This document shows positions 1 through 6,171 of a stretch of 64,000 nucleotides of DNA, one piece after another. Where the stretch lies: positions 493,220-557,219 of the forward strand of contig NW_005434665.1 of the NCBI RefSeq assembly GCF_000315625.1. Direction: 5' to 3'. The notes beneath the pieces were generated by a model, which worked only from the letters and a program-made list of their open reading frames with translations, was not told the origin of the DNA and searched no databases. How positions within the stretch are numbered: the first letter of the stretch is position 1; each line of letters begins with the position of its first letter. Source of the stretch: Guillardia theta CCMP2712. Taxonomy: Eukaryota > Protista > Cryptophyta. The position numbers and the translations under genes were made by a program.

Positions 1-132
1 CAGTCTGCAGGCAATTTTCCTCCTCCTCTCCTCCTCTCCCTCTCCTTCTCGTTTTCTTTCCCCTCTTCTTCTCCTCTCCTCCTCTCCTCCTCTCCTCCTC
101 TCCTCCTCTCCACTCCTCTCATCCTCCAACAG

Positions 133-1599
<1,467 letters not shown>

Positions 1600-1600
<1 letters not shown>

Positions 1601-4600
1601 AGAAATTTCACGTTCTCTCCCTTCCTTACTCACGGGATCGCATCCTCCTCTCCTTCTCCCTCCTCTTCTCCCTCCTCTGCTTGTCCCTCCTCCTCGCCGC
1701 CCTCGCCGCCCTCCCCCAGCACCTCCTCTGCTCCCTCCTCCGGCTCAAATATCTCCTCTTGCCCGTTTTGAGTGCTGAGAAACCTCCTGCTCGCCGTTCA
1801 CACCAGCCCCACAGCAGTTGACACGGGGAAGATGAGAAATGAGGACGAGGATGGACGAAGAAGAAGGAGCAGGAGCAGGAGCAGGAGCAGGAGGGTGGGA
1901 TCAGCAGGAGGAGGGTGGGACGAGGAGCTACCTGAAGCAGTTCTGCTGGAGCATGTGCAAGAGAGGTCGTAGGGTGGAAATGTGAGTCTTGGCCTTGGAA
2001 ATGTCTCCCTCTTCATGTAGAATCTTATCCAACTCAGTCACCTGAAAACCCTTAGTCCTCCTGCTCCCCCTGCTCCTCCTGCTCCTCCTGACTCTCCCCC
2101 TCCCTCCCCTCCCTCTTCCTCCCATCGTCCTTCTCTTACCCCTTGGACTAGCGACTCGACTGCTGACGTCTCCGGTCTCTGCTAGAAGAAGGGTGAGGAG
2201 GAGATCGCAGAGCGAAGATTTCTAGAGGGAGGGGGAGCAGAGCGACGAGAAAGGGAAAAGGAGGAGGAGGAAGCGGAGGAGGAGGAGGGGGGAGGATAAA
2301 GAGAGAGGGGGAGGACAGAACCTTGGAGATGTCGTTTGGCTCCAGGAGGTTGTTCTTCGCGTAAGGGGAGTCGAAGGCGCCAGAGGCGTTGGAGATGGAG
2401 GCCATGGCCTGCAAGAGGAGAGTCAAGGCGACAAGGGACTGAGAGGTTGGCTGATGAAGAAACGAAGATGCTGCAGACGAGGAAGGAGGTTGGACAGAGG
2501 ATGGCCTGGGGGCGGGGGAGAAAGGAGGAGAGGACAATGTGGGACCAAGATATAACACGGAAAAAAGAGGAAGGGAGAGGAACGAAACAAGCTAAACGAG
2601 AATGGGGTGGGTGGGAGTGAGGGAGACCTTTCTTATGAGATGGTTGTACAGGCGTGGAGATCCGTTCAAGAGTTTCCACATCTGGGGACCCTGGCAGATC
2701 GTGCAGATTAGACCGGTCCTGCATCCTCTCCGACGCTTACTTTGATCTCGAGCACCTCAACACATGTGATCGCATGAACATCAACCGTTCGTTGCCTCGA
2801 GACCATGAGCGCAACCTGGACAAGGAGCAAGTCACCGTCCTACTGCAATCGCTCGCTTCTTCCCTCTCCTCCCCTCCAACAACCCTTACCTCTCCGAAGA
2901 AATCTCCTGAGTTCAATCTTGCCACCTCCTTTCCACTGTTGGTCACCCTCACTGCATCAACGTCATTCACCTTCCCCTTGCCCTCCCTCCCTCCCTCCCT
3001 CCCTCCCTCCCTCCTTGTCTCGCTCTCTTCCTCCTCCTCCATTACCGGATCCGTGATCGATGAAGAAAAGCGAGTCGCCAGTGGCTCCAGCATGGACAAT
3101 AGTCTATATTCGGTCTTGTGAGCGGTAGTTGCTCATGGAACAAGAGGAGGAGGAGGAGGAGAGGCAGCTGCATTTTCACCTGGTATGGACAGAACGTGGA
3201 AGCGACAAGAAGCGCATCAAACGAGCTGATCTCAGGAGGATCTTCCATGACCTTTAGAAAGAAATGTGAGCAAGAGAAGGGAGGAAACCGACGTAGAGGA
3301 GGAGATGAGCTAAGTGAAGTGTAGAGGCTGAGGAAGAAAACGGAGGCAGGAGAAGCAGGAGAGCTAATTAGACGAGCAGGAGGATGAGCTGGTAACAACA
3401 CAGGAGGCGAAGGCTGAAGGAAGACCTTGAGGAGCTTCTCAAGAGCGTTGCGACCAGGCGTCTCCTTTCCTGTGATGTCTCCCCAGCCCGTCAAGTCGAC
3501 GTTTCCTCCTCGTTGAATGTTCTCAATCGCCTGGACAACGGTCAGGAGGGAGAGGCGAGGCGAGCTTCGAGGGGCGACAAGGTCGATGGGTGTACTCACT
3601 TGGCGTTTCAAGCTTGTGTACAGCTCGGGATAGTCCGACAGGAGCACCCACAGATCTCTTGCTGACAACTGCATCGTATCATCGTCAGCTTCCCGCATCC
3701 TCTCCTCGCCTACCCTCGTCTTTCTTCCCTTCTTCCTCTCTTCCACTGCCTCCTCCCCTTCCTCCATCCTTCTTTACCTCCAGCAGCTCAGACTTCTCCG
3801 CAGCGACAACCTGGCGATGGAAGCACAAAGGAAGGTGGGCGCAGGCAAGGGGGAGACAAGGAAGGGAGGCGTCAGTATGCGAAGGAGGGAGGAGGAAGCA
3901 ACTCGCCTCTGCTGAAGTGACTTCGGCCATCATCAGACTCACTTCTCCGAAGCAATCTCCACTACTCAGCGTCCTGACTTGCTGCCCATCCACTTGGACC
4001 TCGCAGCTCCCGTGCTCGATGAAGAAGAGCGACCGACCCGACACTCCCTGCCGGATCAGAACATCTCCCGCGTTGGCGATCACCGGCCTAACACGACCTG
4101 CCATGTCCTCTTTGCAAGCGCTCGAGCAGTGAGAAAGGATCACTCCAGCACGCTGCAGTCTCTCCACGTCGACAGAGGGCTGGCTCGGTCTGCTCTGCTC
4201 CTCTCTCATATCGTTGGTGGGGGAAGCAGGGGCAAGGTGATGTGCAAAGTCGCACTCTCCCCGCACGAAGTTGTCCCATGACATGGAGCGATGGGATCCC
4301 ACGGGCGTTGCCGTTCTGGACCGATTCAGATGGTTCACTCGGCTTCCATCCAGAACTCCGTCCGCAAAATCCGACGCCCAAGGCCCTGCGATCGGCTCCG
4401 ACGCCTCCCCAGCAATCTCTCCGAGCAGCTGAACGATCGAGTCTTGACTCGTGATCTGCGACCTGTTGGCCCGATGGGAAGTAGGAGCAGGCCACAAGGA
4501 GACGTCCATGCCCATCGATCTGGGGGCCAAGGATGGCGGTGCTGCTTGAGGCATGGAGGAAACGTTGCCCCCAGCCGAGGAATTCACACTCACATCCTCC

Positions 4601-6171
4601 GCGTTGTTATTCGCCTGCGAACTATACATCTCCTGCTTCACACTCCAGTCCGATCGCGCCATAGGGTCCACTGTCGAAGTTTGTCCGAAACCAAAGGGAC
4701 GAGATTCAGCACCATCCTTGTTTTTGACTTGAAAGTCGCCGGACACGTTGACTCCCATCAAAGGAGCGTTACCCATTCCATACCCTGAAAGTTGTTGTGG
4801 TTGCTGCTGCTGCTGTTGCAAGGGCATCTGCTGCTGCTGCAACTGCATTTGCATGGATTGCTGCTGTTGCTGCAGCATTGGTGTTGACTGCTGCAGCATT
4901 GGTGTTGATTGTTGGAGCATTGGTGTTGATTGTTGGAGCATGGACATCTGCGGTTGCATCTGCTGTTGTTGTGTGGGCATGGACATCTGTTGCTGCAACT
5001 GCGGGCCAGAGCCGAGAGGAAGGCCAGAGGGATGGTTCCAGAGCCCAGCTTCTCGCATTAACCTCGAATTGGCGATTCCTTGCATCTTCGACATCAACAG
5101 AGGGTTGTTCTGCATTATGGGCAAGATGCTCAGAGCAGGAATCAAGAACAGGTTGCAAATGGTAAAAGCAACCACGTCCGCTGTCCTAGGTTCACCCGAG
5201 AGGAGAGAAATTTCACCAAAACATTCTCCTGCTTCAAGAAAAGCAATCTGTCTGCCCCGGACAGACACAGCACATCGTCCTGAGTCGATCACGAACAATG
5301 GACCTGGCGATTGTCCGGCTGAGATTATGACCTGCCCAGCTTGTGCAGTGACTGGCTGCATCATGTTCACAATATCAGAAACAAGAGAAGCATCAAGGCC
5401 CATCAGGATTTGCAATCTTTGTGCAAGCTCCATCATTCTCTGGCCAAGCATTCCTGGCACATTGCTCACAGGCATCGACGATGACATATTGGGTTGCATT
5501 CTACGGGATGGACCGACATAAACCATCAACATTTGAACTTTGTCTCCAGATTGACCGACGATGGAAACGATGTCTACCTTGTAGCTCCTAAAGTTGTTGC
5601 CGTTCATGTCGCCCACTCGGCCGAGGCGGAGGTGCATGAAAACCTTGTCACCGTTGGGACTGGACGAACGAGAAATCCTTGAGAGAAGGTCCACCAGACT
5701 CTGGGCGTCCTGGGGATGAACGATCGATTGCACACTCATTCCAATGATAGATGCCCGGGGTGAGGAAACCATCTCGCTAAGTACAGGATTGACTCTCACG
5801 AATCTCCACTGTTTGTCCAAGACAGCGACGCCCACCATGGGACTTGAGTCCATCACCTGGGATATCAGGCTGTACTGGTGGCTCTCACCGCCCTTCCCCT
5901 TGTTCTTCAGGATGTTACCAACATGTTCAGCTGCAAGCTTGAGGCACTGATTGAGCGTGCGAGGTCCTGAAGATGACTCGGGGAGCAAGCAGTCCAACTC
6001 GTGCAGCTTGTTCTTGGTCGCCCTTCGACGGTCTCGCTCTGCTGCAAGGTGCCGCTCTACGTTGCGACGTCTCGTCTTCGTGCCCGCTCCACCAACCTGA
6101 TCTGCATTGTCTGATCCAAAGTCATCGGCGTTTCCATCGCCTTCTTTCTTCAAAACTACCTCGTTGGACAT
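1600..6171 (-). CDS. bHLH-PAS transcription factor fused to three cyclic-nucleotide-binding domains (CNBDs), multi-exon; 3' end approximate
   Basis: ATG at 6171. bHLH: RHLAAERDRRRATKNKLHELDCLLP...TLNQCLKLAAEHV. PAS: GVAVLDKQWRFVRVNPVLSEM...IIGMSVQSIVHPQD. CNBD1: AGQVIISAGQSPGPLFVIDSGRC...GECFGEISLLSGEPRTADV. Then a Gln-rich linker and CNBD2: AGDVLIRQGVSGRSLFFIEHGSC...GDCFGEVSLM. CNBD3 is assembled from small exons at ~3250-2620: TIVHAGATGDSLFFIDHGS/VRVTNSGKEVARLNSGDFFGE/VALMVSRQRTVDVHAITCVEVLEIK. Confidence 0.85.

Follow-up and report, generated by a model that had tools for sequence, protein, structure and literature searches.

An ARNT-like bHLH-PAS protein with three cyclic-nucleotide-binding domains in Guillardia theta: a candidate cyclic-nucleotide-gated transcription factor

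Can a eukaryotic transcription factor read a cyclic nucleotide (cNMP) directly? To our knowledge, the route from cNMPs to genes in eukaryotes is taught as indirect only, through PKA-CREB, PKG or Epac, and fusions of a cyclic-nucleotide-binding domain (CNBD) with a DNA-binding domain are treated as a prokaryotic trait. The question is raised by one gene in a 64,000-nucleotide stretch of the Guillardia theta CCMP2712 genome (contig NW_005434665.1, positions 493,220 to 557,219; hereafter the window), in which a first-pass annotation, made from the sequence alone, had recognized a bHLH-PAS protein with three CNBDs. From sequence comparison and structural models, we think it slightly more likely than not that the product of this nuclear gene is an ARNT-like bHLH-PAS factor that works as a dimer and is controlled directly by a cyclic nucleotide.

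The gene lies on the minus strand of the window (6171..1928) and codes for 1013 aa in 12 exons, which are separated by 11 introns (Table 1). The exon map was drawn by walking P0001, a complete 1013-aa ORF from an MMETSP transcript, along the window. All codons match, and the translation of the gene is 100% identical to P0001. The gene is therefore genuine and expressed, its genomic exon chain being that of a complete transcript ORF, which also settles the splice chain that the annotation had left to be confirmed. Transcripts might have ended before the CNBDs, but this one has an ORF that continues through all of them to the C-terminus. Of the span originally assigned (1600-6171), the upper end stands, but the coding sequence ends at 1928, so the lower bound would need to be 3' UTR. 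The introns measure 50-219 nt (n=11), and the first (3811-3906), which has a GC-AG boundary, interrupts the CNBD2 cassette. The order of parts that had been read from the sequence (bHLH, single PAS, CNBD1, Gln-rich tract, CNBD2, CNBD3) is upheld by Pfam, profile searches, an AlphaFold (AF2) model and the exon map. P0001 has two parts more, a 77-aa motif between the Gln-rich tract and CNBD2 and a helical hairpin at the C-terminus. CNBD3, suspected from the start to be hidden in four or five small exons, begins in the last part of exon 4 and finishes early in exon 10, with its core in the small exons 5-9.

Table 1. Positions in the window of the bHLH-PAS-CNBD gene, its parts and its exons
Feature	Position	Strand	Basis
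Whole CDS, 1013 aa (P0001)	1928..6171	-	exon walk, 100% identity
bHLH, aa 29-93	5893..6087	-	AF2, profile, Foldseek, Pfam below cut-off, ortholog invariance
Basic region RRRNVERHLAAERDRRR, aa 34-50, H41/E45/R49	6022-6072	-	invariant in orthologs
Single PAS, aa 97-218, HPxD motif (HPQDA)	5518..5883	-	AF2, Foldseek, PAS_4 below cut-off
CNBD1, aa 245-375	5047..5439	-	Pfam cNMP_binding
CNBD1 phosphate-binding cassette FGEISLLSGEPRTADVVA, canonical, Glu and Arg	5167-5220	-	conserved Arg
Gln-rich low-complexity tract, aa 390-461	4789..5004	-	direct sequence reading
77-aa linker motif, aa 576-652	4216..4446	-	alignment; pLDDT ~30
CNBD2, aa 672-795, exons 1-4, cassette FGEVSLMMAEVTSAEVVA	3513..4158	-	Pfam, HMMER, exon map
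CNBD3, aa 818-940, cassette FGEVALMVSRQRTVDVHA	2391..3446	-	Pfam third stretch, PDB matches, exon map
C-terminal helical hairpin, aa 964-1009, exons 11-12	1943..2178	-	AF2 pLDDT 74-85
Exon 1	6171-3907	-	P0001 exon walk
Exon 2	3810-3778	-	P0001 exon walk
Exon 3	3668-3600	-	P0001 exon walk
Exon 4	3530-3426	-	P0001 exon walk
Exon 5	3251-3180	-	P0001 exon walk
Exon 6	3103-3046	-	P0001 exon walk
Exon 7	2951-2890	-	P0001 exon walk
Exon 8	2815-2741	-	P0001 exon walk
Exon 9	2690-2628	-	P0001 exon walk
Exon 10	2408-2322	-	P0001 exon walk
Exon 11	2178-2140	-	P0001 exon walk
Exon 12, stop included	2041-1928	-	P0001 exon walk

The whole arrangement is conserved in a paralog and in a second cryptophyte. 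The paralog (P0002, 969 aa), encoded in the same genome, matches P0001 in architecture and has 705 aa in one frame; its exon map is incomplete, and a 100-N gap in the genomic stretch may fall within the unmapped part. UniProt names it automatically "Cyclic nucleotide-binding domain-containing protein." Hanusia phi has an ortholog, and further fragments come from Baffinella and environmental samples. When 1.84 billion proteins were searched, the next-nearest relatives proved to be short bHLH-PAS proteins of the cryptophytes Proteomonas, Rhodomonas and Hemiselmis, which have no CNBDs. Two incomplete loci contribute little: that of Baffinella frigidus (L005), about one-third of which is N gaps, yielded bHLH-like pieces alone and is uninformative on architecture, and a metagenome contig (L006) ends soon after the PAS. 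Among ESM Atlas clusters searched by features and shape, we found PAS, PAS-CNBD-HTH and diatom HLH-PAS clusters, all scoring <0.9 and serving as leads only, and no HLH+cNMP cluster.

As for the CNBDs, all three have folds of the eukaryotic PKG/PKA-R type. Pfam cNMP_binding (PF00027) recognizes three segments of P0001 (170 bits against a cut-off of 27.5, E 8.6e-51), and PDB matches include PKG, PKA-R, HCN, Epac and CRP, with PKA-R/PKG closest in sequence (E 1e-18 to 1e-25). The closest solved relatives of CNBD1 are apicomplexan PKG and PKA-RI, CNBD3 matches PKG and PKA-R, and the beta-rolls modeled by AF2 for the CNBD2-CNBD3 tandem find their best fold matches in tandem CNB structures of PKG and PKA-R. 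The phosphate-binding cassettes, for which the accessible part of Kannan 2007 gives FGE...R[ST]A as canonical, are unequally preserved. That of CNBD1 is canonical (FGE...PRTA) in both paralogs and Hanusia, with the Arg kept in 3/3 covering sequences, and resembles the "PKG-parasites" consensus GERALLYDEPRSATIKA in the same part of that survey. In CNBD2, the phosphate-binding Arg is absent from 4/4 covering sequences, replaced by Thr in P0001 (opposite the PKG Arg in the HMMER alignment) and by Ala in the paralog. CNBD3 keeps Glu and Arg with Val for Ala (QRTV), the Arg being present in both Guillardia copies; an environmental homolog (P0097) has Thr at the Arg position. Judged by these residues, CNBD2 is degenerate, the CNBD1 cassette is intact and that of CNBD3 is near-intact. 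Since the Arg is kept in CNBD1 and CNBD3 and lost in CNBD2, at most two sites look competent, and the original description of a three-CNBD cNMP sensor, while right about three CNBD folds, was too strong. The Arg-Thr pair of CNBD1 and CNBD3 does not settle the choice between cAMP and cGMP.

These losses bear on a different reading of the protein, a bHLH-PAS factor whose CNBDs are ligand-independent or bind a ligand other than cAMP/cGMP. Such CNBDs would either partner the PAS within the molecule, like the CNBHD and eag PAS of KCNH, or sense a different small molecule. Nucleoside-binding trypanosome PKA-R and CooA/CprK are examples of the latter. Part of the array indeed cannot bind cNMP canonically, since CNBD2 in 4/4 sequences and CNBD3 of P0097 are without the Arg, and the fold matches include cAMP-independent PKA-R of Trypanosoma, whose CNBDs bind guanosine and inosine according to PDB titles (one of a T318R mutant). 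KCNH channels likewise join a PAS with a CNB-homology domain, and the accessible part of Kannan 2007 records CNB families with non-canonical cassettes and other ligands. The full canonical cassette of CNBD1 in both paralogs and Hanusia would, however, be hard to explain otherwise, which favors phosphate binding by this domain, and the Glu and Arg of CNBD3 are retained in both Guillardia paralogs. We consider a loss or change of ligand across all CNBDs unlikely, although it is the most serious of the alternatives.

For the N-terminal module, Pfam scores on P0001 fall below cut-off both for HLH (15.2 bits, cut-off 20.7) and for PAS_4 (21.4 bits, cut-off 23.1); on the paralog, HLH reaches 19.5 bits, and 24.3 in a six-frame genome search. 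The two domains were therefore separately tested by other methods, and both held. With a profile of the orthologs' N-terminal regions, the best PDB matches are ARNT/ARNT2/BMAL1, over bHLH and PAS-A (E 5e-4). The AF2 model of the module (pLDDT 82) shows a bHLH of two long helices and a loop (pLDDT ~90) and a five-stranded PAS fold. When this model was submitted to Foldseek, the top 25 matches were ARNT/BMAL1/CLOCK/HIF/AHR chains (190-207 columns, E 1e-7), and the PAS matched PAS-A/PAS-B of ARNT/HIF as well as bacterial PAS. ESM Atlas PAS clusters were recovered by shape with a TM of 0.51-0.57. BLASTP leads to a Hemiselmis protein (E 5e-13) that passes the Pfam cut-offs for HLH and PAS_9. An HP(D/E)D motif has been described for bHLH-PAS proteins (bioRxiv 10.1101/2023.04.23.537977). 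Profile and predicted fold, rather than the Pfam cut-off alone, thus place the basic region and HLH of P0001 among bHLH-PAS proteins, with a predicted PAS fold directly after the HLH. No second PAS (PAS-B) was found by Pfam scan or in the AF2 model, the sequence after aa 218 leading into CNBD1.

The basic region bears on whether this module contacts DNA. The H-x3-E-x3-R pattern noticed in the first-pass annotation corresponds to H41, E45 and R49, is invariant in both paralogs and Hanusia, and is almost unchanged in the fragments from Baffinella and from environmental samples. One could imagine that the protein binds no DNA and is a scaffold or effector that binds cNMP in the cytoplasm, its HLH-PAS serving for dimerization only, as might be suspected from the HLH score below the Pfam cut-off and from another ORF in the same genome (L003), HLH-PAS-like and seemingly without a basic region. 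We judge this improbable because orthologs and paralogs are only ~50% identical overall, yet the basic region, which has a run of Arg as well as the H, E and R that contact DNA, is invariant, and because the best sequence and fold matches of the N-terminus are DNA-bound ARNT and BMAL1 chains. Two further analyses were uninformative. The predicted complex of the two paralogs' bHLH-PAS N-termini scored 0.27 against a mark of 0.34, which is evidence neither way, and CACGTG occurs 8 times in the window (10.8 expected) with none upstream of the gene, a result that does not count against E-box binding.

An artefact, in which a bHLH-PAS gene and a neighboring CNBD gene had been fused in a chimeric transcript or gene model, would have the unusual architecture alone in its favor. 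It is refuted by single-exon continuity and deserves almost no credence: exon 1 encodes 755 aa without interruption in the genome, starting with the bHLH and reaching the middle of CNBD2 (an uninterrupted ORF at 3685..6171, minus strand, holds the bHLH-like and PAS-like regions, CNBD1, the Gln-rich tract and the greater part of CNBD2), the paralog has an identical layout, and inserts are left in the Hanusia transcript where the first three introns of the Guillardia gene appear to lie.

The Gln-rich tract is a possible activation region by composition; the paralog's tract at this position is not Gln-rich. The 77-aa linker motif, which an alignment finds in both paralogs and an environmental homolog, is predicted to be disordered and contains the sites RSRTATP, HRSMSWD and ASPT. 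By alignment, the C-terminal helical hairpin is also present in the paralog.

How does P0001 compare with known systems? The animal class II proteins ARNT/ARNT2/BMAL1, its best PDB matches in sequence and structure from the basic region through the HLH to the first PAS, share its H/E/R basic residues and PAS HPxD motif. However, they have PAS-A and PAS-B where P0001 has one PAS, identity is only 16-19%, and the three CNBDs and ~800 further residues after the PAS are not known from any animal member. Algal single-PAS proteins, that is, diatom RITMO1/bHLH1a and the short cryptophyte forms, have a bHLH and one PAS as in P0001. Set beside it by description rather than sequence, RITMO1-type proteins have short C-terminal extensions, in contrast to ~795 aa after the PAS in P0001, and the short cryptophyte proteins have no CNBD. 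P0001 corrects the view that algal bHLH-PAS proteins carry short C-terminal extensions only.

Bacterial CRP/FNR proteins, including PAS-CNBD-HTH_Crp, combine a CNBD and a DNA-binding domain in one polypeptide, a logic that P0001 would share, and bacterial PAS + cNMP_binding (+ HTH_Crp_2) clusters are the nearest in the ESM Atlas by features, all <0.9 and leads only. Their winged HTH is C-terminal, whereas P0001 has an N-terminal bHLH and CNBDs of the eukaryotic type, and a Pfam scan with E up to 1 found no HTH family in it. The likeness is one of convergence, and P0001 is no member of CRP/FNR. The tandem CNB-A/B of PKA-R/PKG offers the closest CNBD sequences and the best folds for CNBD2-CNBD3. 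P0001 differs in having a ~35-residue spacer between CNBD2 and CNBD3 and a CNBD2 without Arg, and the Pfam scan found neither a protein kinase domain nor an inhibitor/pseudosubstrate segment. It is related to PKA-R/PKG through its CNBDs only and falls outside that family. KCNH (EAG/ERG) channels, which carry a PAS and a CNB-homology domain without cNMP binding in one protein, are a literature lead and a precedent for PAS-CNBD crosstalk and degenerate CNBDs; their channel domain is absent from P0001.

We found no description of a bHLH-PAS and CNBD fusion in the literature searched, in keeping with the first-pass annotation. The gene is not a one-off, given the 969-aa paralog. A Guillardia bHLH-PAS protein is already included in the RITMO1 phylogeny, where CNBDs go unmentioned. 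The idea that CNBD-DNA-binding fusions are prokaryotic agrees with the accessible part of Kannan 2007, a survey of 30 CNB families, which names DNA-binding partners for prokaryotic families only.

We therefore return to our preferred reading of P0001 as a putative cNMP-gated E-box factor, which may be the first eukaryotic transcription factor to sense cAMP/cGMP directly. Paired either with itself or with the paralog, the protein would bind E-boxes of the CACGTG type through its H/E/R basic region. Since CNBD1 sits ~25 residues after the PAS, cAMP or cGMP bound there could alter PAS/bHLH dimerization or DNA binding. The CNBD2-CNBD3 tandem might act as an allosteric or auto-inhibitory module, like CNB-A/B of PKA-R/PKG, and the Gln-rich tract and conserved disordered motif could recruit co-activators or undergo regulatory phosphorylation. 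Such a protein would be a functional eukaryotic counterpart of bacterial CRP, made from eukaryotic parts. More tentatively, and with less confidence than in direct control by a cyclic nucleotide as such, we propose from the sequences that the Guillardia paralogs are one-component receptors in which cAMP/cGMP on CNBD1 (and CNBD3) would switch an ARNT-like dimer at E-boxes, possibly a CLOCK:BMAL1-style heterodimer of the paralogs. PKA, PKG and Epac would then be bypassed on the way from the organism's numerous nucleotidyl cyclases to transcription or to diel timing.

If true, a conserved, expressed protein combining an ARNT-like bHLH-PAS with PKG-type CNBDs would break the indirect-only rule, as the first transcription factor of a eukaryote known to be gated by a cNMP directly. 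It would add to algal fusions of sensors and transcription factors, such as bZIP-LOV aureochromes, and would give synthetic biology a eukaryotic transcription switch that is compact and under cNMP control, usable in optogenetics together with photoactivated cyclases. It would also be a concrete candidate for what connects gene expression or timing with the cryptophyte's greatly expanded cyclase repertoire. The class III nucleotidyl cyclase domain has at least 78 six-frame matches in the Guillardia theta genome, and cNMP signaling is thus plentiful in this organism.

The minus strand of the window carries an 828-codon ORF (3685..6171), the first 380 residues of which matched P0001, a 1013-aa protein with a complete ORF from an MMETSP transcript, at 100% identity in a word search. 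With this identical database protein as reference for the spliced product, P0001 was followed codon by codon along the window, GT/GC-AG introns being permitted. This gave a chain of 12 exons with a perfect codon match, which begins with an ATG at 6171, ends with the stop codon 1928-1930 and has introns of 50-219 nt. Intron 1 (3906-3811, minus strand) is of the GC-AG type, with donor GCGAGT, and interrupts the phosphate-binding cassette of the second cyclic-nucleotide-binding domain (CNBD2). Since its length is a multiple of three, an ORF finder reads through it in frame. The first-pass annotation had placed a bHLH-PAS region and three CNBDs in one gene, which is borne out by the identity between the transcript ORF and the genomic exon chain. 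A joined gene model, as an artefact, is excluded since the fusion is continuous within a single exon.

Exons of the window gene, in window coordinates
Exon	Position	Strand	Basis
1	6171-3907	minus	P0001 codon walk
2	3810-3778	minus	P0001 codon walk
3	3668-3600	minus	P0001 codon walk
4	3530-3426	minus	P0001 codon walk
5	3251-3180	minus	P0001 codon walk
6	3103-3046	minus	P0001 codon walk
7	2951-2890	minus	P0001 codon walk
8	2815-2741	minus	P0001 codon walk
9	2690-2628	minus	P0001 codon walk
10	2408-2322	minus	P0001 codon walk
11	2178-2140	minus	P0001 codon walk
12	2041-1928	minus	P0001 codon walk

Because HLH (15.2 bits, Pfam cut-off 20.7) and PAS_4 (21.4 bits, cut-off 23.1) are both sub-threshold in P0001, these domains were tested by other means. 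When a profile of three N-termini (A1) was compared with all PDB sequences, the ten best matches were all ARNT/ARNT2, followed by BMAL1 and then MITF, in a single continuous alignment that covers profile positions 37-171, basic region to PAS-A (best E 5e-4). Residues 25-232 were modelled with AlphaFold2 on a 16-sequence alignment (mean pLDDT 82); the model displays a helix-loop-helix, a connector helix and a PAS fold with five strands. Searched against the PDB with Foldseek, it aligns over 190-207 columns with its 25 best matches, all chains of ARNT, BMAL1, CLOCK, HIF or AHR (E 1e-7 to 4e-6), and isolated PAS domains rank next; an Atlas shape search also returned PAS sensors (TM 0.51-0.57). 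By BLASTP (E 5e-13), the match to a Hemiselmis tepida "BHLH domain-containing protein" from UniRef spans bHLH and PAS, and that protein clears the Pfam cut-offs (HLH 30.0 bits, PAS_9 32.1 bits). The basic region, RRRNVERHLAAERDRRR, with H41, E45 and R49, is invariant in both G. theta paralogs and Hanusia, and near-invariant in Baffinella and environmental fragments. Class B bHLH proteins that bind CACGTG, ARNT among them, have this H/E/R configuration. An HPxD motif, here HPQDA, is present in the PAS domain; it has been noted for bHLH-PAS proteins in a survey of PAS domains (bioRxiv 10.1101/2023.04.23.537977). Together, these findings sustain the bHLH-PAS assignment, and with it the earlier reading of an H-x3-E-x3-R basic region followed by one PAS domain. 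[quoted passage not shown]

Elsewhere in the genome (contig G000:C55; stretch L003, 712-1980, minus strand), an intronless 422-aa ORF is weakly similar (E 0.12) to the HLH-PAS region. It has no obvious basic region and, by analogy with Id or AhRR-type proteins, may encode an HLH-PAS partner or inhibitor.

As for the C-terminal modules, Pfam recognizes three cNMP_binding stretches in P0001 (170 bits, cut-off 27.5, E 8.6e-51) and as many in the 969-aa G. theta paralog P0002. In the PDB, all three CNBDs are nearest to the CNB domains of apicomplexan PKG and PKA-RI (E 1e-15 to 1e-25), CRP, HCN, Epac and MloK1 ranking lower for each; judged by sequence, these modules are of the eukaryotic type rather than CRP-like imports. 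A model of aa 560-1013 (mean pLDDT 60, folded parts 65-88) contains two β-rolls with their helices, and by fold it is closest to the tandem CNB-A/B structures of PKG Iβ, PKA RIα/RIIβ and Bcy1. The protein ends in a conserved helical hairpin.

The cassettes were compared by aligning the ten available CNBD copies, across which FGE is invariant. In the survey by Kannan et al. (2007), the cassette Arg is defined as the phosphate contact. It is kept in CNBD1 (EPRTA) in all three covering sequences, missing from CNBD2 (EVTSA) in four of four (EMATA, EVASA and EFTTA elsewhere), and, for CNBD3 (RQRTV), kept in both Guillardia paralogs (HQRTV) and missing in the environmental homolog P0097 (QGTSV). On this basis, the CNBD1 cassette looks fully competent and CNBD3 is probably competent, both as predictions, while CNBD2 reads as degenerate or re-purposed. 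The Thr that follows the Arg is found in cGMP-binding and cAMP-binding domains alike, and the ligand is therefore not assigned as cAMP or cGMP.

By its architecture, the protein would be a dimeric E-box-type factor, with a putatively competent CNBD1 about 25 residues past PAS and a PKA-R-like CNBD tandem at the C-terminus. Translated in six frames, the G. theta genome gives 78 or more matches to PF00211, the catalytic domain of class III adenylyl/guanylyl cyclases, which indicates a large cyclase repertoire and makes ligand supply plausible. Many of these matches are paired as two domains inside open frames of about 870-1350 aa. We lean slightly towards direct gating of DNA binding or activation by cyclic nucleotides. 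That the CNBDs are ligand-independent or bind another ligand seems unlikely, albeit with precedents in KCNH channels, which pair PAS with a CNBHD, and in the nucleoside-binding PKA-R of trypanosomes (one PDB entry is a T318R mutant). A scaffold role without DNA binding is improbable. E-boxes occur in the 64-kb window at chance level. Of the first-pass annotation, which proposed a candidate one-component cAMP/cGMP-sensing factor, the architecture and bHLH-PAS assignment hold; its interpretation is supported in part, and of the three CNBDs, all recognized by Pfam, CNBD2 has a degenerate cassette.

Two regions outside the domains were also compared. CNBD1 is followed by a Gln-rich tract (aa 390-461), at the corresponding place of which P0002 has a Pro/Ser/Gly-rich tract. 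The paralogs, whose identity is otherwise about 50%, share with an environmental fragment a conserved motif of 77 residues at aa 576-652 (window 4216-4446, minus strand). It is predicted to be disordered (pLDDT about 30) and is rich in RxxS/T and S/T-P, i.e., basophilic and proline-directed Ser/Thr sites; we read it as a putative regulatory or partner-binding linear motif.

In the 87.1-Mb, 669-contig G. theta assembly, a second locus on contig G000:C125 encodes P0002, which UniRef assigns to this species (705 residues in a single frame, 100% identical); P0002 is therefore a paralog of the window gene in one genome. The two share 46% identity over 758 aligned exon-1 residues and 64% over the C-terminal half. 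The paralog (L002 1423-3537 and L007 695-4350) has the same bHLH-PAS-CNBDx3 layout; its stretch includes a 100-N assembly gap, and its exon map is incomplete for aa 706-923. Intron 1 of P0002 lies at the same codon position, but has a GT donor. P0003, from Hanusia phi, is the P0002 ortholog (80% identity), with inserts, read by eye, at positions matching window-gene introns 1-3, which suggests introns retained at conserved sites. This 790-aa EukProt ORF stops early past the inserts, seemingly in an intron-retaining transcript.

Against 1.84 billion representative proteins, the N-terminal profile gave only 64 matches at E<=1e-3. Those at family level are P0001, P0003 and short fragments from JGI/ENA environmental contigs, and Baffinella frigidus, one copy carrying a mistaken Asgard archaeal MAG label. 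The next tier consists of short bHLH-PAS proteins (277-435 aa); the three traced are from the cryptophytes Proteomonas, Rhodomonas and Hemiselmis, and in these no CNBD was found, the sequence stopping just past PAS. Word searches with the C-terminal half recovered the full-length architecture in P0001-P0003 only, and two environmental fragments, about 49% identical, covering the linker motif, CNBD2 and the start of CNBD3 in one case and CNBD2 and CNBD3 in the other. The fusion is thus established, at the level of sequence, in Guillardia and Hanusia and is probably present in other cryptophyte-like plankton; profile and word searches, which compare sequences rather than architectures, did not reveal it beyond those groups.

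Our literature search found no paper with bHLH-PAS and a CNBD in one protein, EAG channels being the sole co-occurrence, which agrees with the earlier statement that no such architecture was known as described. The RITMO1 tree includes one G. theta bHLH-PAS, and algal members are described as having one PAS domain and a short C-terminal extension (Annunziata et al. 2019). As far as the accessible part of the Kannan et al. (2007) survey extends, HTH DNA-binding partners are given for prokaryotic CNB families only. The P0002 sequence is already public, auto-named "Cyclic nucleotide-binding domain-containing protein" by UniProt; the combination is not discussed in the literature searched. The window gene encodes a bHLH-PAS factor with a single PAS, to which CNBDs of the PKG type are added. 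It would share with CRP the logic of a CNBD and DNA binding in one protein, but is not a CRP-family member.

Several minor observations accompany these results. P0093 (cluster of P0015), a 208-aa cryptophyte-type bHLH-PAS fragment deposited under a "Promethearchaeia archaeon" MAG, is probably eukaryotic contamination of an archaeal bin. In Baffinella frigidus (MU646974.1, L005 10600-11600), several weak, overlapping matches to bHLH helix-1/loop adjoin a single strong one; N gaps take up about a third of this locus, the product annotated there has only 65 aa, and the gene model is probably truncated. Finally, window 1-1300 has a strongly negative GC skew (-0.5) and contains long CT-rich, microsatellite-like tracts; on each of the two strands these give rise to pseudo-ORFs of poly-Leu, poly-Pro, Ala-Pro and Arg-Ser.
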